A program made the position numbers and the translations under genes. 64,000 nucleotides of DNA from Octopus bimaculoides. Its lineage: Eukaryota. Every line of letters starts with the position of its first letter. Position 1 is the stretch's first letter. The stretch lies in NCBI RefSeq assembly GCF_001194135.2, contig NC_068985.1, positions 16,352,275 through 16,416,274 on the forward strand, in the 5' to 3' direction. Shown one piece after another: positions 1,940 through 60,549 of this stretch. The notes under the pieces are model-generated. The model was not told the origin of the DNA. It was given only the letters and a program-made list of their open reading frames with translations, and searched no databases.

Positions 1940-4900
1940 CTTTTGCTCCTGCCACCAATTCATATCTTTTGATGGCGTCTTCTACACGAGGTAGCTACCC
2001 TTCATCAGACACGATGATGGTGACATCATCCGCATATGCCGTCACTCCTCTACCATAACATAGATCATGCGGATCTTCCCCCGCGGCCTCCAACCTCCGC
2101 AGCAGCAGCTCAAGAGCCAATACATACAGAAGCGGGGACAGGAGGTAGCCCTGGCGAACTGAACGCTCGATCGCGAACGGCTTCGAGAAGAAACCGTTCA
2201 TCCGGACGATGAGCCGATGTCGCTATACATACATTGATCCAACCACGAAAAGTCGGGCCCAGTCCGACCGCCCGGAGGACCGCCACCAGATACCGATGGC
2301 CAACCCTATCATGTGCCTTAGACTGGTCTAAATTCACCAGTGCCCCACCTTTGCCAGAAATGTTATCCACCCGTTCTATAGTGTAGCGTATGAGGTGAAA
2401 GTTGTCGTGTATTGTCCTTCCTAGGATGGCGCATGTCTGCACTTCTCCCACCAGACCACCCACGACAAGCTTCACTCTTTTGGCTAACATCTTGGCCAAA
2501 ATCTTTAACTCTGTGCTTAGCAGAGTTATGGGCCTGAAATTATTAATGTAATCCCCTTTGCTCGGGTCCCTCTTGATCAGTGTTACTACTCTCCGGCTCA
2601 CAGATTTGGGAATTCTCCCGTTCTGCTGCCAGTTTGCGTATACAGCGGCCAGTATGTTCCCGAACAAGTCTGGCATACTCTTATAAAATTCGTAAGGAAG
2701 ACCATCCAGTTCCGGCGACTTATCCCCGGGCACTCGGAAAGTACCTCTATGACCTCCGCAGCTGTGATCGGTTCTTCATAGTGCTACGCTTCACGTGCCG
2801 GGAGACACGGACCGCCGGCCAGGAAATCCCGAAGGGCATCCCCATGGTCCAGTGTCCCGCCCCTCTCGAACAACGCAGCGAAATGCACCTGAAAGGCCTT
2901 ACACATCTCTTCATGTCCTTAGATCTCCTGTCCTTGTTCGTTTACCACAGACCTTATCGTAGCATCTACGCCACGTTGGGTTTCTATCGAGCGAGCCCAA
3001 CTGACAACGTTGATACCCTTGCAACCCAGTGCACGTACTTTAGCCCGGACCCTGCAACCGTGTTTGGCATTGAGGTGTCGGTCCAAGGCCGATCTCGCCT
3101 AACGCCTTAACTAGAGACCCTTCTACTCTAGCCTGCTCTAGACTCAACTGTTTACTAAATCTAATAGACTCAAGTCGAATGGCTCTTTTGAGGGCATCCC
3201 ACCACCGGTTATTCAACACGGTGCCAGTGAGTGCCCTCATGACTAACTCCTTAATCTGGCTACGGTATGTTTCGCAAGCCAATAAGGTCTTGTTCAACTT
3301 CCAGTAGCCAGATCCCTATCTATGGACTTTATCTATATGTACCCTACATGTCACTAATTTGTGATCCGTGTAGGGTATATAAGTAAACTGTGGAAAGCTA
3401 AAGGAGGATTTATCTCTTCACTACTATCATGTCTATATAAAACCTGAGAAATCCGCTGTTATTACTCCAAGTCCACATTGGAACTCTTGGATTCGCAAGT
3501 CAGTATCGCTCTGCCAGCCTAATTCGGTTCAGCAGATCGATGAGGCGTGAGTTACTTTTGCTATCGGTCGAGTCAATGCTATCTGGGCGTGCATCAAGAA
3601 TAGCGTTAAAGTCTCTTAGCATCACTATTGTCTTTGACGTCACGAGTAAGTCCTCCAGGCGTCGATAGAACTCATTCCGTTTGTCTGTTGAATGAAGCGC
3701 GTAAATGCCGATCAACCTGAAGGTCTTACCACTGAATGTTAGATCCAGAACGACTGAGTCACCTTCTAGGTCTACAAAGATTGTACGTGTTTGCAGAGCC
3801 AAGCTTTTTCGGAGCAAAACCACAACGCCCCCTCCCCCGGTCCGACGAGGAGACATGATTTTCTTATAGTCATTCAGGAGGTTTGAGAAGACCTGCAGCT
3901 TGTCCAACTTGGTATCTGTAGCAACCATAATATCAATTTTATGTGAGCTGAGGTCGTCGAGGAAACAAGCTTGCTTCCACTACGAGCTCAGGCCACACAC
4001 ATTTACACAGCCTATACGTAGCGTAGCCATGTCATCAACGAGAAAAGATGGAAATCTACTTTAGTCAAAGGAGATCATTCTCAGTACTGATGAGGCCGGA
4101 ATTTCCCCTTTCATTTCTTCAATGGTCAGTTCTGCCGGCGGGTCGAACATTTTGTGTAAGTCTTTTAATTCTATAATTCCTTTTGCAAATCTACTTTTGA
4201 AGTCCTTGTAGAGTTCTCTTGGGATTTTAGCAATGCTGTTAGGATATTTACTATTACGCGTCCGATATATACTGCTTTGTAAATGGAGTTTGATTACCCC
4301 CCCTCATTGAATTGTTGGTGTTTTGAATACCACTGTGATCATTTCCTTTTGGACTTGGGTATGTCAATTTTTACCAAATTTAATGTTTTCTTTTTTTTTT
4401 ACCTTCAGGGTTATATTTTTTTCTTTCTTTAGTTCTCGGAGCCACCTCTTTGGTAGGCGACTCCACTACTTTCTTTCGCCTTTTTCGCGACACCGTCTCG
4501 AAGTTCATTTATTCTGCTGACAGTGTCACTTCGGCTGGTTTTACGATTGGTTCTGGTTCGGCGGTTGTCCTCTGCGTAACAGCCTCCGTGGTTGGGGGCG
4601 CTGCCTTTTCTTCATCTTCTTCCTGTCTTTTTCTCCTGTTCTTTTTCTCCTGTTCTTTTTCCTTTTGTGAGCATTTTGACCTCAGGTGCCCCTTCTTTCT
4701 ACAGTTGAAGCACCTGGGTTTCCTTTCTTCTACGTGCACAGTTAATATGGTGTCTTCGCCAATGTAAATCTTTTCTGGCAAATTTTCGAGGTCCATTGTT
4801 GTTGCCTGGGCCAAGATCTCCAGAGTTTGCCCTCGCCAGTTTTGTGGAGCGTCTCTGAAGATTAGTATTATGTTTATTTTCTCCTCTCTCTCGTATAGGA

Positions 4901-7800: not shown

Positions 7801-8892
7801 ACCGGTGTTGCTTTCTGTAATATTAATTCTCTCCATTTCTTATTGGTCAGTAATTTTTATTGCAAGTAAAATAACGTCCTGTGAGTATCATTTTTTTGAG
7901 GCCAAAGTCGCGAAGAAGTTCGAATTAACAAAGATTTCCAGCGATAAAAATTGCTGAAACAATTACTTTGGAACATAAACATAATTGAAAATTATATAAT
8001 TCTTTTGAAGAACTTGTAGCAGAAGTGATTTACATTGTCATTATGTATGAGGTGTTTTCGTTGAGTTATCTAGGCTTAAATACTCGGATATGGGCTCCAC
8101 AAGCCTTTTCGTTCCAACAGGTCACATGACCTTGTGATTAGCTATTAACTGAAATTATTGTTTGTATTGGTCGGTTTCCAGCCGTCCAATCGTGTTGATG
8201 CAACAGTTTCTTTTTTCCTTACGCGGGAAATTAATCACCAGCTCTAGGAGCCTATTGATTTCTATAATAACGACAGTTCTCGACTGCTCTAGGTCTTTGG
8301 CACACGCCACTGACTACACGCAACTCGTCTCAGGCAATGATGTACCTGACACCAGTCAGTCACCGCTTTCATCTTCTCCACCAGACGTCTGCCTACATCG
8401 TTGCTGTATGAACACTACATGACCAATAGACCAACGGCTGCCTCTACACACCACCAAACAGTACGTCTACTATGTCTACAAGATCGACAGTCCAGCCTAA
8501 CCACGAAATCTCTCACACATCTTTGCGGTAACCTGTTATAGTTATTTTATTTCATTGTATGGCAATCATTGTATTTTATAATGGAGAATAAATCGTCGCT
8601 TGGATCTATTTTAAAACGGGGGCCACATTTTTCATTAATGTTTTACGTAGTGTTTTTGGTACCGAAAGACTTTCAAACTTCGTATACTTATCTATTTTGT
8701 GTTATAGAACAGAAAAATATTTTTGTATTCGAATTTATTTCATGTAAAAAATTGTCTTATTTCGATAATTTGAACCAATCACTGACAAGTATTCAGTTGT
8801 TTACATTTACTCCTTTGGCTGATTAAGCGGTGTAAAGCGTATTTAATCTCCATACCTTCGTTTTATTTGCTTTTTTCATTTTAAATTTGCTT

Positions 8893-9920: not shown

Positions 9921-10384
9921 TAGGGACATCAAATATTATTTCCATCATTAGCTACTTTACGAATATCATTATGATTTTTGTCTACGTGGGATCCACCAAA
10001 GTAAAACAGAAATAAAAGAGATTCATAAGTAAAAACAAAAAAATAAATAAAAACAAAGATGAGAGTCACTGCTTTAATGTTACAAGGAGAATACCGACGC
10101 TCAGTTAATGTGGATTATCTAAAGCTCAATTCAAACATGATTTACAGTACTAAATAAATTTAGACCTGATGGTAGGTTTCTCACGCCGCAAAGTATTTAA
10201 AGGTGGTTCAGATTGATAAATAACGAAGATAGTGACACAGATTCAGACAACGAACATTGCAAGCAAATAAACTTTCAACTCACTGGCTTTCCGAAATTTT
10301 TAATCAATATTAATATTGCTGCTAACATTGTATTTTAGAAACTTCTAGAAAGATAGTGTTCTAATATTCCTATCAAATTTTGGC

Positions 10385-10572
10385 ATAAAGTCGACAATTT
10401 CAGAGGTGGGGTAGTCGATTACATCGACTCCAGTGCTCAACTGGTACTTATTTTATTCACCCCGAAAGGATGAAAATCAACCTAGGCGGAATTTGAACTA
10501 AAAAAGGTACAGACGGACGAAACGCCGAAAAGCATTTTGCCCGGACTGCTAAGGATTCCGTCAGCTTGCCGC
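10385..10572 (-). mobile_element. SINE family A
   Basis: gtcgattacatcgactccagtgctcaactggtactt...ccgaaaggatgaaa core. Confidence 0.85.
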
Positions 10573-10599
10573 CCTATATACTGTTCTAATATTTATTTC

Positions 10600-10818
10600 T
10601 TTATTGCCCACAGGGGGCTAAACGTAGAGGGGACAAACAAGGACAGACAAAGAGATTAAGTCGATTACATCGACACCAGAGCGTAACTGGTACTTATTTA
10701 ATCGACACCGAAAGGATGAAAGGCAAAGTCGACTTCGGCGGAATTTAAACTCAGAAAGTAGCGGCAGACGAAATACTGCGAAGCATTTCGCCCGGCGTCC
10801 TAACGATTCTGCCATCTC
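10600..10818 (-). mobile_element. SINE family A (near full length)
   Basis: Core plus head ending taacgattctgccatctcg. Confidence 0.9.
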
Positions 10819-11560
10819 GGGAAAAATAATTCTCTTTATTTCTCAAATTTATCGAGATTATCACTGTTACAGCTTTGAAAAGAAAATACTACTTCATTTA
10901 CGTTCGGATTGNNNNNNNNNNNNNNNNNNNNNNNNNNNNNNNNNNNNNNNNNNNNNNNNNNNNNNNNNNNNNNNNNNNNNNNNNNNNNNNNNNNNNNNNN
11001 NNNNNNNNNNNNNNNNNNNNNNNNNNNNNNNNNNNNNNNNNNNNNNNNNNNNNNNNNNNNNNNNNNNNNNNNNNNNNNNNNNNNNNNNNNNNNNNNNNNN
11101 NNNNNNNNNNNNNNNNNNNNNNNNNNNNNNNNNNNNNNNNNNNNNNNNNNNNNNNNNNNNNNNNNNNNNNNNNNNNNNNNNNNNNNNNNNNNNNNNNNNN
11201 NNNNNNNNNNNNNNNNNNNNNNNNNNNNNNNNNNNNNNNNNNNNNNNNNNNNNNNNNNNNNNNNNNNNNNNNNNNNNNNNNNNNNNNNNNNNNNNNNNNN
11301 NNNNNNNNNNNNNNNNNNNNNNNNNNNNNNNNNNNNNNNNNNNNNNNNNNNNNNNNNNNNNNNNNNNNNNNNNNNNNNNNNNNNNNNNNNNNNNNNNNNN
11401 NNNNNNNNNNNNNNNNNNNNNNNNNNNNNNNNNNNNNNNNNNNNNNNNNNNNNNNNNNNNNNNNNNNNNNNNNNNNNNNNNNNNNNNNNNNNNNNNNNNN
11501 NNNNNNNNNNNNNNNNNNNNNNNNNNNNNNNNNNNNNNNNNNNNNNNNNNNNNNNNNNNN

Positions 11561-22299: not shown

Positions 22300-23144
22300 T
22301 CAATTTTGTCCAGGGATCACGTAAGGGCGTCGATGCTTGATCACATCATTAGCTGAAGATGTACTCGGTTGAACTCTCCTTCTCACTAATTTTTTCAATT
22401 CTTCTCTGAACAACCGACCGGTCAACATGTACAAAACAAAATGAAATGTATTGTCGAAATTTGAAAGTATTATCATCACGTATTTGATTGTCAAATCTTT
22501 GGCTACTTCCATTTCAAGTAAAGGAAATACGAAAGAAGGTGGAAGTGAACAAATCAGATACATTATATTTATGGCCAACACCAAGATAATATTGTCGTTA
22601 CTTTTCAGAGTTGACCATGATTTTGGACGGCGGCACAGAGTAATGATTATAGTAACAGTACATGTAATCCATGTCGGAAGTGAAAATATCTACTATGAAC
22701 GATATTAACAATTAAGAGAATAATAGCAATTCTAATAAGAGTAACAATTTGTGATTTCCAACCAAACTTTTTCATTCGGGCTGAGAACGGTCGTGATATA
22801 GCAAACATTCTCTGGGCGGAAATTGCAACGGTAATCCAAGAGCTGAGCTGACGTATGAAGAAAATTAAAAATTGAATATACTTGCACATTATTTCACTTA
22901 TTACTGATTCCTCCACAAGCATTTTTAATAGCATTTGGTGCGAACATGATACTACAATAATTAAGTCGTTTAAGCAGAACGCAATCAGAAAGATTCCGAT
23001 GTTTATGCTTCTTAGTCTTTTTCTGCAAAGCACTACCAACGATACTGTGTTACCAAAAATACCAATAACAAACATAACTATGGCACTGGTAACCGTCACA
23101 GGGTGCATTGATACCCTCATGTCGAGTGAAGAAACGTCATTCAT
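22300..23144 (-). pseudogene. Single-exon class A GPCR pseudogene (paralog 1), frameshifting deletion in ECL2/TM5
   Basis: ORF 22647-23144 gives TM1-TM4 (GIFGN, CLND, MC, AQRMF). A second frame gives TCTVTIIITLCRR...LAINIMYLICSLP...HFVLY..GRLFREELK. Against paralog 3, about 79 nt (most of TM5) is missing near 22655. Confidence 0.85.
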
Positions 23145-26179: not shown

Positions 26180-26392
26180 CTTTCTGCTAGAGGCACAAGG
26201 CCTCAAATTTGTGGGGGAGGAGACTAGTCGATTACATCGATCCCAGTGTTTCACTGGTACTTTATCTATCGACCCCGAAAGGATGAAAGGCAAAGTCGAT
26301 CTCGGCGGAATTTGAACTCAGAACGAGGCGGCAGACGAAATACCGCCAAGCATTTCGCCCAGCGTTCTAACGATTCTGCCAGCTCGCTGCCT
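26180..26392 (-). mobile_element. SINE family A, full length, (TAA)n on both flanks
   Basis: Head ggcagcgagctggcagaatcgttag (A box) ... gagttcaaattcc (B box) on the minus strand. Confidence 0.9.
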
Positions 26393-26439
26393 TAATAATA
26401 ATAAGAAGAAGAAGACTGAAAGAGGAGGAAAAGTAACTA

Positions 26440-29820: not shown

Positions 29821-32440
29821 CCGTATTTTACTCGGCTATAAGTCGCACTTTTTTCCCCTGAAATTTTCACCTAAAGTTGGAGATGCGACTTATTAGCACA
29901 TCCTATAAAAAAAAAATGTTCACATATTTTCTAGGTACAAGCCACGTCTGAAGTTCCGACACTTAGAATAACCAAAAACACCCGATTCGCTAATTCCGAA
30001 GCCGAGAAGTATACGGAAGACGATCTTTAGATATTTCTTTATATATTTCTTGGTGGAGATGGAGTATATGTAATCTGGGTATACCCCCACTTTTAAATTT
30101 TGTTTTTTTTTACGGAATCCTATGTTTCAGACCATGGAGAATCCGATTCTGGAAAAAAATTTTCAAAAATCTCAATTTCAAAATTTCGATCCCCCCCCCC
30201 CGGTTTTTATATAGATCCACAGGGTAAACCTAACCCTAACTCAAACCCTAACCCTAACCCTAACCCTGACCCTAACCCTAACCCTAACCCTAAACCTAAA
30301 CCTAACCCTAACACTAGTTTTGTGAGATTTGGCTGTTATTTCTAGCATGTAAATAGCCTGCTTGGTGGGGGGAGGGGAATTGAAATTTTTCAAAAATTTT
30401 TTTTTCAGAATCGGAATCTCCATAGCCTAAAACGTGGGATTCCGTAAAAAAAATTAATAAATAAGGGGGGGGGAGGTTCAGATTACATATAGTCCATCTC
30501 TACCTATTCCTTTACTTCTATTAATATGAAATAAACGATTTAATTTTTAAAAAGTTTAATGCTTGTTTGTTTTTGCACTGTGCCTTTTATTTGCTAACAT
30601 GAAGAGATGCCGTGTTATTTGTTAACATGAGGCGAAAGAGAAAGTCGTATGATATCACTTTCAAGCTGAAAGTTGCTGAATACTCGAAATTGCATTCGAA
30701 TCGAGCTGCAGAAAGCGAATTCGGAGTCTCGGGGAAAATGGTCAGGGATTGGCGTTCGAAAGAGGAGAAAATGAAATCAGTTGACATCAAATTGTTACAG
30801 AAAATTGGGATAGGAATGAGTCCCAAGGAGGAGATGGAGACTATTTTGAGAGACTGGGTGACTGAACTACGCACTTGGCGTCACAAGAAACCTCATTAGA
30901 TTTCGGGCTCTCCAAGTGACTAAAGAACATGGTATATCCGACTTTAAAGCATCTCCTGGCTGGTGTACGAGGTTTATGAAACGCCACAATCTTACGCTGA
31001 GACAGCGGACTCATATTGCATAGAAATTACCCGCCGACGTAGAGAACAAAGCTGATTCCTTCCAACGGTATGTAATAAGACCTACGAAAAAGTCACGAGT
31101 TTGCCTTGGAAGCAATCGGTAATATGGACAAGACATCCCATTATTTCGATATGGTTGTATATCGGACAGTCGACGTTAAAGGGAAAAACTACGGGGAGTG
31201 ACAAGGCTCACTTCACCGCAATTTTGGCTTGTGTAGCTGACAGTACGAAACTTACCCCGGCTATTGTTTTCAAAAGAAGGACTTTCCCGATAGTGAAGTT
31301 TCCGAAGGGCATGATGGTGTACGTTCATGAGAAAGGGTGGGTGGATGAAACCGTATTGATGAACTGGTTAAACAACGTGTGGTTCAAGTGCCCAGGGGCT
31401 ATGCTAAAAGTCGCTTCTTATATGGGATATATTCAGGGCTCATCTGATCGACAGCATAAAAAATAGATTAAAAGAGTATCGTACCTACCAGGCTGTGATT
31501 CCAGGTGGATGTACATCTGTGCTTCAGCCACTCGACGTGTCGGTGAACAAGCCTTTTAAGGTGAACATGCGTGCCAAGTGGAATGAATAGATGATTAATG
31601 GTGACAAGGAAATGACAACGGTTGTAAACTTAAAACGCCCTGACCTCAAGATTGTTTGCCAGTGGGTGATAGATTCATGGGCTGAAATACCGTGTGAACT
31701 TGTGGTGAAATTATTTTTGCAGTGCAGGATCTCAAATTCCATGGATGGTACGGAAGACGATGAGCTATATAATGACATCGTCTGTGCTAGAAATGTTAGC
31801 CCCAGTGCTTCATCAGTTAAGGAAGATTAGACAAGTGAAGACGCAGATTAGGGTGTATACGACGAGACCATCACAACCGAGGAGTTTTACCAGTTATTTG
31901 GTGAAAGTGATGATGAAAATGATGATTAGTATAACTCGATTTTTCCTTCATTTAATCTTCGATTTTTGTCACAATATTTTATACACTTCCTTACAATTTA
32001 AAACAGTTTATTGTATTTTTTTCCAACCGGAGCACGTATGACTGCATGGTTTTGTGTGTCAGATGCTGCAAAAGTGTCCTAATAATGAAAGGGCATAAAT
32101 CAAAAAGTAAAGGGAAAGTATCGAGGCAATTAAGTTTCAATACGATAAACAAATCAACTAGAGTTATCAAGGATAAAATTTTACATTATAAACAACGGTT
32201 TCTAAAATGCATGGACTTAATGGGATAACAGTTGTTGTAAGTCATCTTCAGCTTACTGAAAGCTCGCTTACCGAACAACAACTATGTCAGCACGATTCCT
32301 AATCAAACTTTGCTCTCCAACATCAGAAAAGTTGCTGCAACATCAGAAAAGTCGGGTCAATGATAAAATTCCCGATTTGAACCTTGTAATTCAGGGGTGC
32401 GTCTTGTAGACAAGGGTGTTTTATAGTCGAGTATATACGG
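29821..32440 (+). mobile_element. pogo/Tc2-type (POGK-like) DNA transposon, decayed
   Basis: TA|ccgtattttactcggctataag ... tatagtcgagtatatacgg|TA termini. Brinker-type DBD KRKSYDITFKLKVAEY...VRDWR, CENP-B-like HTH and DDE_1 fragments (GNMDKT, KGWVD, QPLDVSVNKPFK). Confidence 0.88.
30053..30502. mobile_element. ~450-bp foldback with ~150-bp arms enclosing a (CCCTAA)n array, inside the pogo element
   Basis: gagatggagtatatgtaatctg...tttacggaatcc...ggagaatccgattctg mirrored by cagaatcggaatctcc...ggattccgtaaa...cagattacatatagtccatctc; array at ~30228-30311. Confidence 0.8.
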
Positions 32441-34105: not shown

Positions 34106-34972
34106 TCATGCGTTTATATTAACTGCAAAAATATTTATTTTATCTTTTCTTTTTAGTAAAAGTTTCATTTCTTCTCTGAATAAACGACCAGCCACCATGT
34201 ACAAAACGAAATTAAATGCGTTGTTAAAGCCAGATATTAGAACATAAATATTGTGTGAATTTTCAAACTTTATTTTACTGGCGAAGGAAAATATGATTGA
34301 AGGCGGAAGAGTACAAATTAGAAACATTATATTTATTGCCAACACCAAATAAACCGTGTTATGTTGGGGTGATGTGTCTCTGGAAATGGGACGGTGGTAT
34401 ATAGTGTTGATGATGATAATGTTACATATAACCAATATTATAGCTGGTAAAAAACTATAGATCGTACTATTAAGTATGAGGTTTATCAGATTGTTCGAAT
34501 TAATATATATCTCGTGTTTCATGAAGACAAAGCTGTTATAAACAATGCTAATGATTATTAGAACCCCAGCCATTATAATGAGACTGATGATTTGGGGTTT
34601 ATAACCCTTAGGAAGTATCCTGAGAACTGAAAATGGTCGGGACAAAGCAAACATCCTGTGGACTGTAATCATAACTGTAATCCATGAAGAAAACGCCCGG
34701 GAAAAGTTAGCAATGATCCAAATGACTATGTTTAAGTTTTTATTTATATTTTCTCTTCGTATGTTGAATGTTCCAAGCATTATGTCGAGGAGTGTGGTAT
34801 GAAGTACGATTAGATCATTGAAACAGAGTACAATTAAATAGAGTCCAATATTCATACTTCTTAGTTTTTTTCTACAAAGCACTACCAGAGAAAAAATGTT
34901 GCCAAGTGTACCGATGACAATCATAACTGCTGCAATAACGATTGACGCTTGATTTAGCCGAGAACTATCCAT
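34106..34972 (-). CDS. Single-exon class A GPCR (paralog 2), FMRFamide-receptor/srw-like, candidate chemoreceptor
   Basis: 288-aa intact ORF with seven hydrophobic segments; GTLGN (TM1), CFND (TM2), VHRMF (TM3), YSFLP (TM5), FLICTLP (TM6), NFVLY (TM7), GRLFREEMK (helix 8). Confidence 0.9.
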   Translation of the reverse strand: MDSSRLNQASIVIAAVMIVIGTLGNIFSLVVLCRKKLRSMNIGLYLIVLCFNDLIVLHTTLLDIMLGTFNIRRENINKNLNIVIWIIANFSRAFSSWITVMITVHRMFALSRPFSVLRILPKGYKPQIISLIIMAGVLIIISIVYNSFVFMKHEIYINSNNLINLILNSTIYSFLPAIILVICNIIIINTIYHRPISRDTSPQHNTVYLVLAINIMFLICTLPPSIIFSFASKIKFENSHNIYVLISGFNNAFNFVLYMVAGRLFREEMKLLLKRKDKINIFAVNINA

Positions 34973-39711: not shown

Positions 39712-40590
39712 TTAACTGGTCATAATTGTAAAAGTACTTGGGCGTCGTTTTCTTTTCAGCATTGTTTTCATTTCGTCCCTAAATAGACGCCCTGCCAAAA
39801 TGTACAAGATGAAATTGAACACATTATTGAAGCTACATAGTAAGATTAAAAAGGATTTTGCTGAATTTGCCATGTTTGATCCATTAGATAAGGCTAATGC
39901 GACAGAAGAAGGAAGAGTGCAAATCAAAAACAATATGTTTATTGCCAGTATCATATAAACTGTGTGGTTATTTACTTGTGAAGTTGACTGTGATGCGTTT
40001 CCAGCGATAGAACGGCGACAGAGTGTAAATACAATAATAATGTTACATGAAATCAAAATTGCAGCCGGAAAAAAGCTGTACATGACGCTTGCAAAAAACA
40101 CAGTCACCGTTTGGCTCGGAGTAACACAACGTCCATTCTCGAAGTAAAAATATCTGCTGTAAACTATGTTAACGCTTGCTAGAATAGCAAGCATTATAAT
40201 GATATTTATAATCTGGGGTTTATAACCAGTCAAAATTCTCGCCCTGGTTGACAACGGTCGAAACACCGCAAACATCCTGTGGACTGTAATAATGACGGTA
40301 ATCCAAGAGGAAATTTCCCTGAAAAAATGAATAAAATAACGGGAAAAACTACAGTTATTTTCAAACATATACACTAAGCTTATATCCAATGGCACAACAT
40401 GGTTATTGAATAATGATGTGTAGAGGACGAGTAAATCGTTTAAACACAGTGCAATCATGTATAGTCCTATATTCATAGTTCTCAGTCTTTTCCTGCAAAG
40501 TACTACCAGAGAAAATATGTTACCTATTGTACCAATAACCAACATTATTATTGCAGCGTAGGTGGTAGTTAAATTGTAAGAAGCCTGCAT
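39712..40590 (-). CDS. Single-exon class A GPCR (paralog 3), FMRFamide-receptor/srw-like, candidate chemoreceptor
   Basis: 292-aa intact ORF with 7 TM segments; N-terminal NLT sequon, GTIGN, CLND, NNC (C3.25), VHRMF, ENGRC (ECL2 Cys), YSFFP, FLICTLP, NFILY, GRLFRDEMK. Confidence 0.92.
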   Translation of the reverse strand: MQASYNLTTTYAAIIMLVIGTIGNIFSLVVLCRKRLRTMNIGLYMIALCLNDLLVLYTSLFNNHVVPLDISLVYMFENNCSFSRYFIHFFREISSWITVIITVHRMFAVFRPLSTRARILTGYKPQIINIIIMLAILASVNIVYSRYFYFENGRCVTPSQTVTVFFASVMYSFFPAAILISCNIIIVFTLCRRSIAGNASQSTSQVNNHTVYMILAINILFLICTLPSSVALALSNGSNMANSAKSFLILLCSFNNVFNFILYILAGRLFRDEMKTMLKRKRRPSTFTIMTS

Positions 40591-48404: not shown

Positions 48405-48970
48405 TACTTACTCCTTTACTTGTTTCAGTCATTTGACTGCGGCCATGCTGGAGCACCGCCTTTAGTCGAGAAAATCGACCCCAGGACGTATTCTTTGTAA
48501 GCCTAGTACTTATTCTATTGGTCTCTTTTTGCCGAACCGCTAAGTTACGGGGATGTAAACACACCAGCATCGGTTGTCAAGCGATGGTGGGGGCACAAAC
48601 ACAGACACACAAACACACACACAGATATATATATATATATANNNNNNNNNNNNNNNNNNNNNNNNNNNNNNNNNNNNNNNNNNNNNNNNNNNNNNNNNNN
48701 NNNNNNNNNNNNNNNNNNNNNNNNNNNNNNNNNNNNNNNNNNNNNNNNNNNNNNNNNNNNNNNNNNNNNNNNNNNNNNNNNNNNNNNNNNNNNNNNNNNN
48801 NNNNNNNNNNNNNNNNNNNNNNNNNNNNNNNNNNNNNNNNNNNNNNNNNNNNNNNNNNNNNNNNNNNNNNNNNNNNNNNNNNNNNNNNNNNNNNNNCCAA
48901 GGTGCCACGCAGTGGGACTGAACCCAGAACCATGTGGTTGGTAAGCAAGCTACTTACCACACAACCACTC
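48405..48970 (-). mobile_element. SINE family B spanning a gap at its internal microsatellite
   Basis: 3' part at 48405-48640; tRNA-like head ccaaggtgccacgcagtgggactgaacccagaaccatgtggttggtaagc at 48896-48965. Confidence 0.85.
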
Positions 48971-59989: not shown

Positions 59990-60192
59990 TTTTTGCACAA
60001 GGCCAGTGATTTCTAGGGGTGGGGTAAGTCGATTACATCAACCCCAGTGCTCAACTGGTACTTATTTTATCAACCCCAAAAAGATGAAAGGCTAAGTCAA
60101 CCTTGGCGGAATTTGAACTCAGAATGTAAAAAACAGACAAAATACTGCAAAGCAGTTTGCTCGACAATAACGATTCTCCCGGCTTGCCGCCT
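59990..60192 (-). mobile_element. SINE family A downstream of the Ly6-like stop codon
   Basis: aagtcgattacatcaaccccagtgctcaactggtactt...ggcggaatttgaactcagaa. Confidence 0.85.
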
Positions 60193-60549
60193 TATATTAA
60201 ACTATAATAGTAAAATCTAGCAAAATGAAAATGCTATGAATAAAGCATACTGTATCTGAATAGTTACAAAATAGTATATGTTTTATGCTACAATATATTT
60301 ACACAACAATCTAACATATAATATTTAATACATGTGAAAAAAATAAAATTATAAACTTTATAAAATTAAAAATAAAATGTAAGTATGGATAAGGAATTAT
60401 GAAAATATAATCCCATCATGGGAATTGTATAAAAAAATCTTCATGTAATATATGAAAATACAATCAATTTCTGGTGACTTTATGGATATGTTTTGGAAGG
60501 ATATGTTAGCACCCTACTGAAGAAGGATACAGCTTCATTCAGTAGATAC

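Follow-up and report, generated by a model that had tools for sequence, protein, structure and literature searches.

A class A receptor gene in a tandem octopus cluster lacks both cysteines of the TM3-ECL2 disulfide and is intact in three species

Results

The window, by which we mean the whole 64-kb stretch of DNA analysed here, is AT-rich, contains assembly gaps (3,428 N) and carries numerous microsatellites; matches at the protein and DNA level assign it to Octopus, and its non-coding DNA is 94% identical to O. sinensis chromosome CM016863.1. With tblastn, three intronless GPCR paralogs were located in it, all on the minus strand, and they are called P1 (~22300..23144), P2 (34106..34972) and P3 (39712..40590) below. 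Together they span ~18 kb of one strand, an arrangement that counts as tandem clustering by the definition of Nath et al. (2025). P2 and P3 are sister genes, 48% identical and with ~5 kb between them, and in O. sinensis P2 and P1 are likewise neighbours. Since all three paralogs are also present in a third species (species C, from Logan runs), the cluster is older than the split of the three species. P2 is an intact, intronless gene for a class A (Srw-like) GPCR of 288 aa, as judged from its ORF, Pfam match, AlphaFold2 model and orthologs. P3 is intact as well, at 292 aa and with both cysteines of the TM3-ECL2 disulfide (ORF, Pfam, alignment and AlphaFold2 model), and so is its ortholog on L004.

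The decayed copy in the window is P1, and an earlier account of the cluster is corrected on this point. Its reading frame changes in the tblastn match, and alignment to the O. sinensis gene (P0004) reveals three lesions: a 15-nt deletion at the N-terminus, a frameshifting deletion of 79 nt with its junction at 22670/22669, which took out the top of TM5 together with the stretch holding the ECL2 Cys, and, toward the 3' end, one inserted nucleotide. Both O. sinensis (P0004) and species C (P0006) have an intact P1.

Transposable element remnants lie in the same window, namely a reverse transcriptase fragment (RVT_1; 2110-2733, minus strand) and a pogo/Tigger-like transposase remnant in two frames, with a Brinker DNA-binding domain and DDE_1 (30612-31466, plus strand). 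Interspersed short repeats occur at 48409-48641, 10413-10819, 26226-26394 and 60025-60194, and two inverted copies of the element seen at 48.4 kb flank the P2 region in O. sinensis (L006:31-256 and 8645-8879). Another cephalopod contig (L007; ENA ERZ21867824) carries two Cys-bearing paralogs of the type represented by P0005, at 224-1738 and 10001-10954, ~9 kb apart; the call for the first of them has in-frame stops 5' of the receptor part.

The disulfide between TM3 and ECL2 is among the most conserved features of class A receptors, and folding or ligand binding usually suffers when it is removed. The first-pass annotation of this DNA held that P2 has lost both cysteines of this bond and yet keeps an open reading frame, and on both counts it was right. 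When P2 is aligned to its paralogs and relatives, the Cys3.25 column at the top of TM3 is occupied by Asn81 (codon AAC, 34730..34732, minus strand) and the ECL2 Cys column by Tyr156 (codon TAT, 34505..34507, minus strand), and the frame runs uninterrupted through 288 codons. Asn and Tyr stand at these positions in all 3 species. The Tyr156 codon is a single transition away from TGT. An assembly or alignment artefact was considered and is excluded, since three independent assemblies are concordant. Four cysteines remain in P2, of which the AlphaFold2 model puts C33 on the border between TM1 and ICL1, C50 in TM2, C183 in TM5 and C220 in TM6; going by that model, no extracellular Cys is left. By alignment, the P2 ECL2 is as long as that of its Cys-bearing sisters.

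The contrast drawn earlier with the two neighbours is also correct: P3 has both cysteines, C80 in ENNCSF (Cys3.25; codon at 40351-40353, minus strand) and C155 in ENGRCV (the ECL2 Cys; codon at 40126-40128, minus strand), and the P1 remnant retains C3.25 in the motif EIMCKY. P2 does lack an N-terminal glycosylation sequon, as had been noted, although this is uninformative in a protein whose TM1 begins at residue 3 of the AlphaFold2 model. We have set the N-glycosylation argument aside, since in most of the P2/P3 clade the N-terminal tail amounts to a few residues. The sequon of P3, at N6, is as near the membrane as the P2 N-terminus, and a sequon so near a membrane helix is poorly used.

The best Pfam match of P1, P2 and P3 alike is Srw (PF10324), in each case above the curated cut-off; P2 scores 46.3 bits against a cut-off of 22.2, with the best stretch at residues 15-158. 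Against the general class A profile, 7tm_1 (PF00001), P2 falls short (22.5 bits, cut-off 30.5), and P3 (39.3) and P1 (38.1) pass. The class A relationship of P2 is not in doubt, because the family profile matches PDB class A chains to E=1e-22. PF10324 describes nematode Srw chemoreceptors, which are peptide-receptor-like, whereas the present genes are molluscan and the P2 match covers the N-terminal half only; as a sequence match, it indicates a family relationship, not a shared function. Six anchor residues of P2 (N25, D53, R106, P176, P223 and Y258) are invariant or nearly so in an alignment of 150 sequences, and we take them to be N1.50, D2.50, R3.50, P5.50, P6.50 and Y7.53. Several canonical motifs are altered: P2 reads H-R-M (VHRMF) at the end of TM3, C-T-L-P with no W6.48 in TM6, and N-F-V-L-Y in TM7. 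However, H or Q at 3.49 (H/Q-R-M) is common to the clade of P1, P2, P3 and P0005, with E-R-x in the wider family, and NFxxY replaces NPxxY in nearly all of the 150 closest relatives; hence, these deviations are not specific to P2.

An exhaustive HMM search returned 743 cluster representatives of the family with E<=1e-30; at 1e-10 their number exceeds 10,000. A Cys occupies the C3.25 column in 135 of the 150 best family representatives, and thus its loss from P2 is no effect of chance or alignment. When the same 150 were scanned for Cys within residue windows, 11 were found to lack both cysteines and 1 to lack the ECL2 Cys only. Since 11 of these 12 deficient members lack both, the two cysteines are kept or lost together. 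The neighbour-joining tree places P2 inside a set of receptors that have the cysteines (P1, P3 and the P0005/cuttlefish type), and a second Cys-less branch holds the members of the Cys-less set other than P2 and its ortholog: P0009, P0015, P0017, P0019, P0026, P0034, P0073, P0085 and P0103. This second clade resembles P2 in having lost both cysteines, in belonging to the Srw-like family and in being short (244-334 aa), but it branches separately and its ECL2 is shortened, and P0009 is only 29% identical to P2. From the nesting of P2 among Cys-bearing receptors and the separateness of the other branch, it follows that paired loss has occurred independently at least 2 times; the second clade is the older one. 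P0017, at 274 aa, has the length of the 825-nt genes in the Scaffold18646 cluster (group 1) of Table S2 in Ritschard et al. (2019), although the match is one of length only. P2-type orthologs turned up in octopus-derived data only, among 5.8 billion proteins in which cephalopod genomes are sparse, and the next relatives are 45-49% identical.

To ask whether a receptor gene without its disulfide is maintained or decaying, three species were compared: A is the window, B is O. sinensis (L006:1200-2066) and C is the species of Logan SRR11869390 (L001:1148-2014). The O. sinensis ortholog, which is missing from the genome annotation, is an intact gene of 288 codons on CM016863.1, ~8 kb upstream of LOC115211734. 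In species C, P2 is called as a protein of 312 aa (P0002, on L001; Logan assemblies of SRR11869390, -91 and -94), its 24 additional residues being due to an in-frame upstream ATG (L001:1076-1147). Neither the window nor O. sinensis has an ATG at that position, and the shared Met is therefore the likely P2 start. Counted from it, P2 has 288 codons, the identical stop and zero indels in all 3 species, and a search for disabling lesions across the three Octopus species found none, including in the two close relatives, where the earlier account had asked whether disabled orthologs exist.

The flanking DNA shows how much change such a sequence could have accumulated. Non-coding divergence in the flanks is 6% for A-B and 14% for A-C, with 13 and 22 indel events, respectively. 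At these rates, 6.5 (A-B) and 11.7 (A-C) indels would be expected in 867 nt, against 0 observed; for the A-C pair, the probability of zero indels is 8e-6. When 104 random substitutions drawn from the flank mutation spectrum were simulated, the ORF stayed open in 2.7% of cases (P=0.027). The amino acid sequence itself is less strictly guarded. Overall pN/pS is 0.52-0.61 (Nei-Gojobori; one-sided Fisher p = 0.0003-0.04) and pairwise omega is 0.65-0.86 (YN00 and ML), but measured against the flank mutation spectrum the value for the whole protein is ~0.80, which does not fall significantly below 1 (p=0.12), and thus amino acid constraint averaged over the whole protein is weak.

It might accordingly be argued that P2 is under relaxed constraint and drifting toward loss. 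Ligand binding by its outer face would already be gone, and the gene would be either weakly maintained, in a ligand-independent or partner role, or simply not yet disabled. The weak average fits this notion, as does the fate of the neighbour P1, already a pseudogene in the window and, where its copies are intact, at an omega of ~0.85 with 16 gapped codons. P2 is also unmatched in the published table of O. bimaculoides GPCR expression. Three same-strand genes with the spacing seen in the window have no match in the O. bimaculoides sheet of Table S2 of Ritschard et al. 2019 (PMC6408891), and no gene record was retrieved when the exact P2 protein sequence was looked up. Ocbimv22023137m (Scaffold3495:29071-29946, minus strand, 876 nt), which is expressed in skin only, is at most a length match for P3: its CDS length is equal but its coordinates are incompatible with the window. 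Similarly, the Logan contigs were considered as possible transcripts and rejected as such, in view of their microsatellite ends and their collinearity with the genomic flanks over 2.7 kb.

What the averages conceal is that change in P2 is unevenly distributed. Variable sites fall in ECL1 with the adjoining end of TM3, in ECL2 with the tops of TM4 and TM5 on either side of it, and in the neighbourhood of ECL3, and the motif-bearing residues 84-118, 194-230 and 249-267 are nearly invariant. For a formal comparison, layers were set by rule from the AlphaFold2 helices, by assigning the loops and dividing every helix into an outer, a middle and an inner third; a first partition had been drawn by hand after the variability map, and the rule-based one gave the same result. 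The outer layer has N/S=4.34 and an omega of ~1.66, compared with ~0.76 in the middle and ~0.41 in the inner layer, and the outer layer differs from the rest (Fisher p=0.002). With the flank-derived mutation spectrum, the non-outer part of P2 is constrained (omega ~0.49, p=0.0015), while the excess of outer omega over 1 is borderline (p=0.06), with estimates of ~1.2-1.7 across tests, all of which rest on three close species. In P3, for the same species pair, no layer gradient was found (outer vs rest p=0.61). Non-synonymous changes in the outer layer number 15 in P3 and 36.8 in P2, at 8.0 and 8.2 synonymous changes, respectively, so that the P2 outer layer has 2.5x the non-synonymous change of P3 at equal synonymous change.

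An outer omega at or above 1 is what relaxation would produce, but a gene drifting toward loss sits poorly with an inner omega of ~0.41, with the near invariance of the three motif-bearing segments, and with the absence of indels and premature stops in three species. We therefore regard relaxation toward loss as unlikely. The earlier claim that P2 is not decaying is upheld by its constant length, start and stop, by the missing indels and by purifying selection on its inner and middle parts; the dN/dS comparison proposed as a check speaks for it in the non-outer part and, with the flank spectrum, not in the protein as a whole, where omega is not significantly lower than 1.

The predicted structures differ in the same region. 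AlphaFold2 models P2 with 7 TM helices and helix 8 (pLDDT 89.2, pTM 0.87), TM1 starting at residue 3, and gives P3 a confident 7TM fold (pLDDT 90.7). In the P3 model, ECL2 forms a two-stranded hairpin (149-151 and 154-156), C155 lying in its latter strand, at a local pLDDT of 92. In the P2 model, the TM4 helix extends to residue 155, leaving an ECL2 of ~5 residues without strands, at a local pLDDT of 72. The models were compared by secondary structure and pLDDT, and the ECL2 difference should be read as qualitative and predicted.

These observations bring up adaptive neofunctionalisation; the paired loss had been read as neofunctionalisation at the outset. In the adaptive version, removal of the tether would have opened the vestibule, and positive selection would have retuned the outer face to a new class of ligand. 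An outer-third omega of ~1.2-1.7, the 2.5-fold outer non-synonymous change relative to P3 and the predicted loss of the ECL2 hairpin are all in keeping with this, and positive selection has been inferred in the pockets of other lineage-specific receptors (PMC11886862; PMC6408891). Yet the excess over 1 is borderline, site and branch-site tests would need more than three taxa, and the relative-rate test is flat: since the duplication, P2 has acquired 33 unique residues and P3 36 (Tajima test p=0.7), by which a faster P2 branch after duplication is rejected. Adaptive retuning of this kind is, in our estimation, quite unlikely. Of the original proposal, the remodelled pocket fares better, in that the outer-third excess of non-synonymous change and the hairpin missing from the model both point to it, albeit indirectly, whereas nothing here tells neofunctionalisation apart from a plain relaxation on the extracellular side. 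The original interpretation is partly supported, the extracellular face of P2 being remodelled or at least released from constraint.

With regard to ligand class, a Foldseek search of the P2 model against the PDB gave 1043 matches at E<=0.001. The best are class A receptors with TM-scores of 0.64-0.77 and 13-20% identity, namely the ghrelin receptor, GPR30, the mu- and delta-opioid receptors, C3aR, the alpha1A adrenoceptor and V1aR. Searched against the PDB, the family profile first matches GPR139, H2R, NTSR1, GALR2 and GHSR. A few lipid-type receptors (CysLT2, GPR174, PAFR) are present lower in the match lists. Melanocortin receptors also do without the TM3-ECL2 disulfide, and the first-pass annotation had suggested, by analogy with these and with cannabinoid and S1P/LPA receptors, that P2 might take lipid or membrane-entering ligands. 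The one point in favour of the analogy is the common absence of the bond. It is true that S1P1/3, LPA1 and CB1/2 are functional vertebrate receptors without a C3.25-ECL2 bridge, but they bind lipids, and P2 has no special similarity to them in sequence or fold; among solved structures, it is closest to receptors for peptides or amines. Moreover, most lipid GPCRs keep the bond, its absence being a feature of S1P1/3, LPA1 and CB1/2, and the S1P1 structure has intraloop disulfides in ECL2 and ECL3 and a helical N-terminal cap (PMC8779880). P2, as modelled, has no extracellular Cys from which intraloop bonds could be made and practically no N-terminal tail that could serve as a cap. The lipid suggestion finds no support in the comparisons made here, and a lipid receptor seems to us very improbable.

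Discussion

Taken together, these results make it probable that P2 is a selectively maintained orphan class A GPCR, specific to the octopus lineage, in which the disulfide has been lost, the outer face is free to vary and the core is constrained. The sequence of events that we envisage begins with intronless Srw-like receptors that are arrayed in tandem and subject to birth and death. The P2 ancestor would have lost both partners of the bond before the three sampled Octopus species diverged, Cys3.25 becoming Asn and the ECL2 Cys becoming Tyr, and, if the models are right, also the ECL2 beta-hairpin that P3 retains. From then on, the extracellular third of P2 would have changed at the neutral rate or faster, and purifying selection would have acted on the TM core and the G-protein-facing side, with R3.50, ICL2, TM6 with its Pro, the N..NFxxY of TM7 and helix 8. 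The product would be a receptor with an untethered, more flexible and fast-evolving ligand vestibule, as in receptors of the chemosensory type.

The components of this scheme are not of equal strength. The residues, the conservation of the ORF in three species, the gradient of selection, the place of P2 in the tree and the predicted folds are observed. Most likely, P2 still signals via a G protein as a 7TM receptor; we infer its competence to signal and, given the family-wide departures from the class A motifs, assume its coupling. Loss of the disulfide may have led to the fast evolution of the outer face, and the role of P2 may be of the chemosensory type. A stronger version would hold that loss of the tether enabled adaptive retuning of the outer face, that the vestibule without disulfide or hairpin is under positive selection, and that P2 and P3 differ in ligand class; we think this improbable.

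The general phenomenon, that is, lineage-specific expansions in lophotrochozoans without the TM3-ECL2 disulfide, is already published. Nath et al. (Mol Biol Evol 2025) analysed, across 238 genomes of lophotrochozoans, class A expansions that are specific to single lineages, and those that they modelled have no conserved TM-ECL disulfide, the typical TM3-ECL2 link included (PMC11886862). In gastropods, cephalopods and other molluscs, compensating intraloop bridges are absent too, which was read as greater ECL2 flexibility (PMC11886862). P2 matches this account of the disulfides exactly and, like these receptors, is a tandem, fast-evolving class A gene with variable extracellular loops and pocket. 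The P2 cluster differs in that the loss is visible within a single small cluster, both cysteines persisting in the sisters P1 and P3 and in the P0005 type, which is found across cephalopods, and P2 itself in that its loss is conserved in three species and accompanied by a selection gradient of its own.

An earlier study by Ritschard et al. (Proc R Soc B 2019) reported cephalopod-specific class A expansions, groups 1 and 2, that form tandem clusters (PMC6408891). Their relatives are of the neuropeptide type, their expression is tissue-specific and outside the brain, and some branches have omega > 1 (PMC6408891). Clusters of short group-1 genes of single-exon size, 825-924 nt, are given in Table S2, and the paper makes no mention of disulfide or cysteine status (PMC6408891). 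P1, P2 and P3 are like these groups in being octopus class A receptors in tandem clusters.

What is gained here is incremental, because the pattern has been reported in lophotrochozoan expansions and because the family itself holds an older Cys-less clade. The locus nevertheless adds a resolved case, with sisters side by side, a loss that has become fixed and has been kept in three species, and a gradient of selection specific to the untethered copy. If the stronger version is true, P2 and P3 would be a natural matched pair for learning what the class A disulfide constrains. One sister is tethered and the other is not, and the untethered copy, intact in three species, alone has the fast outer face. 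This makes the pair convenient for asking what constraint the bridge imposes on chemosensory-type GPCRs of invertebrates.
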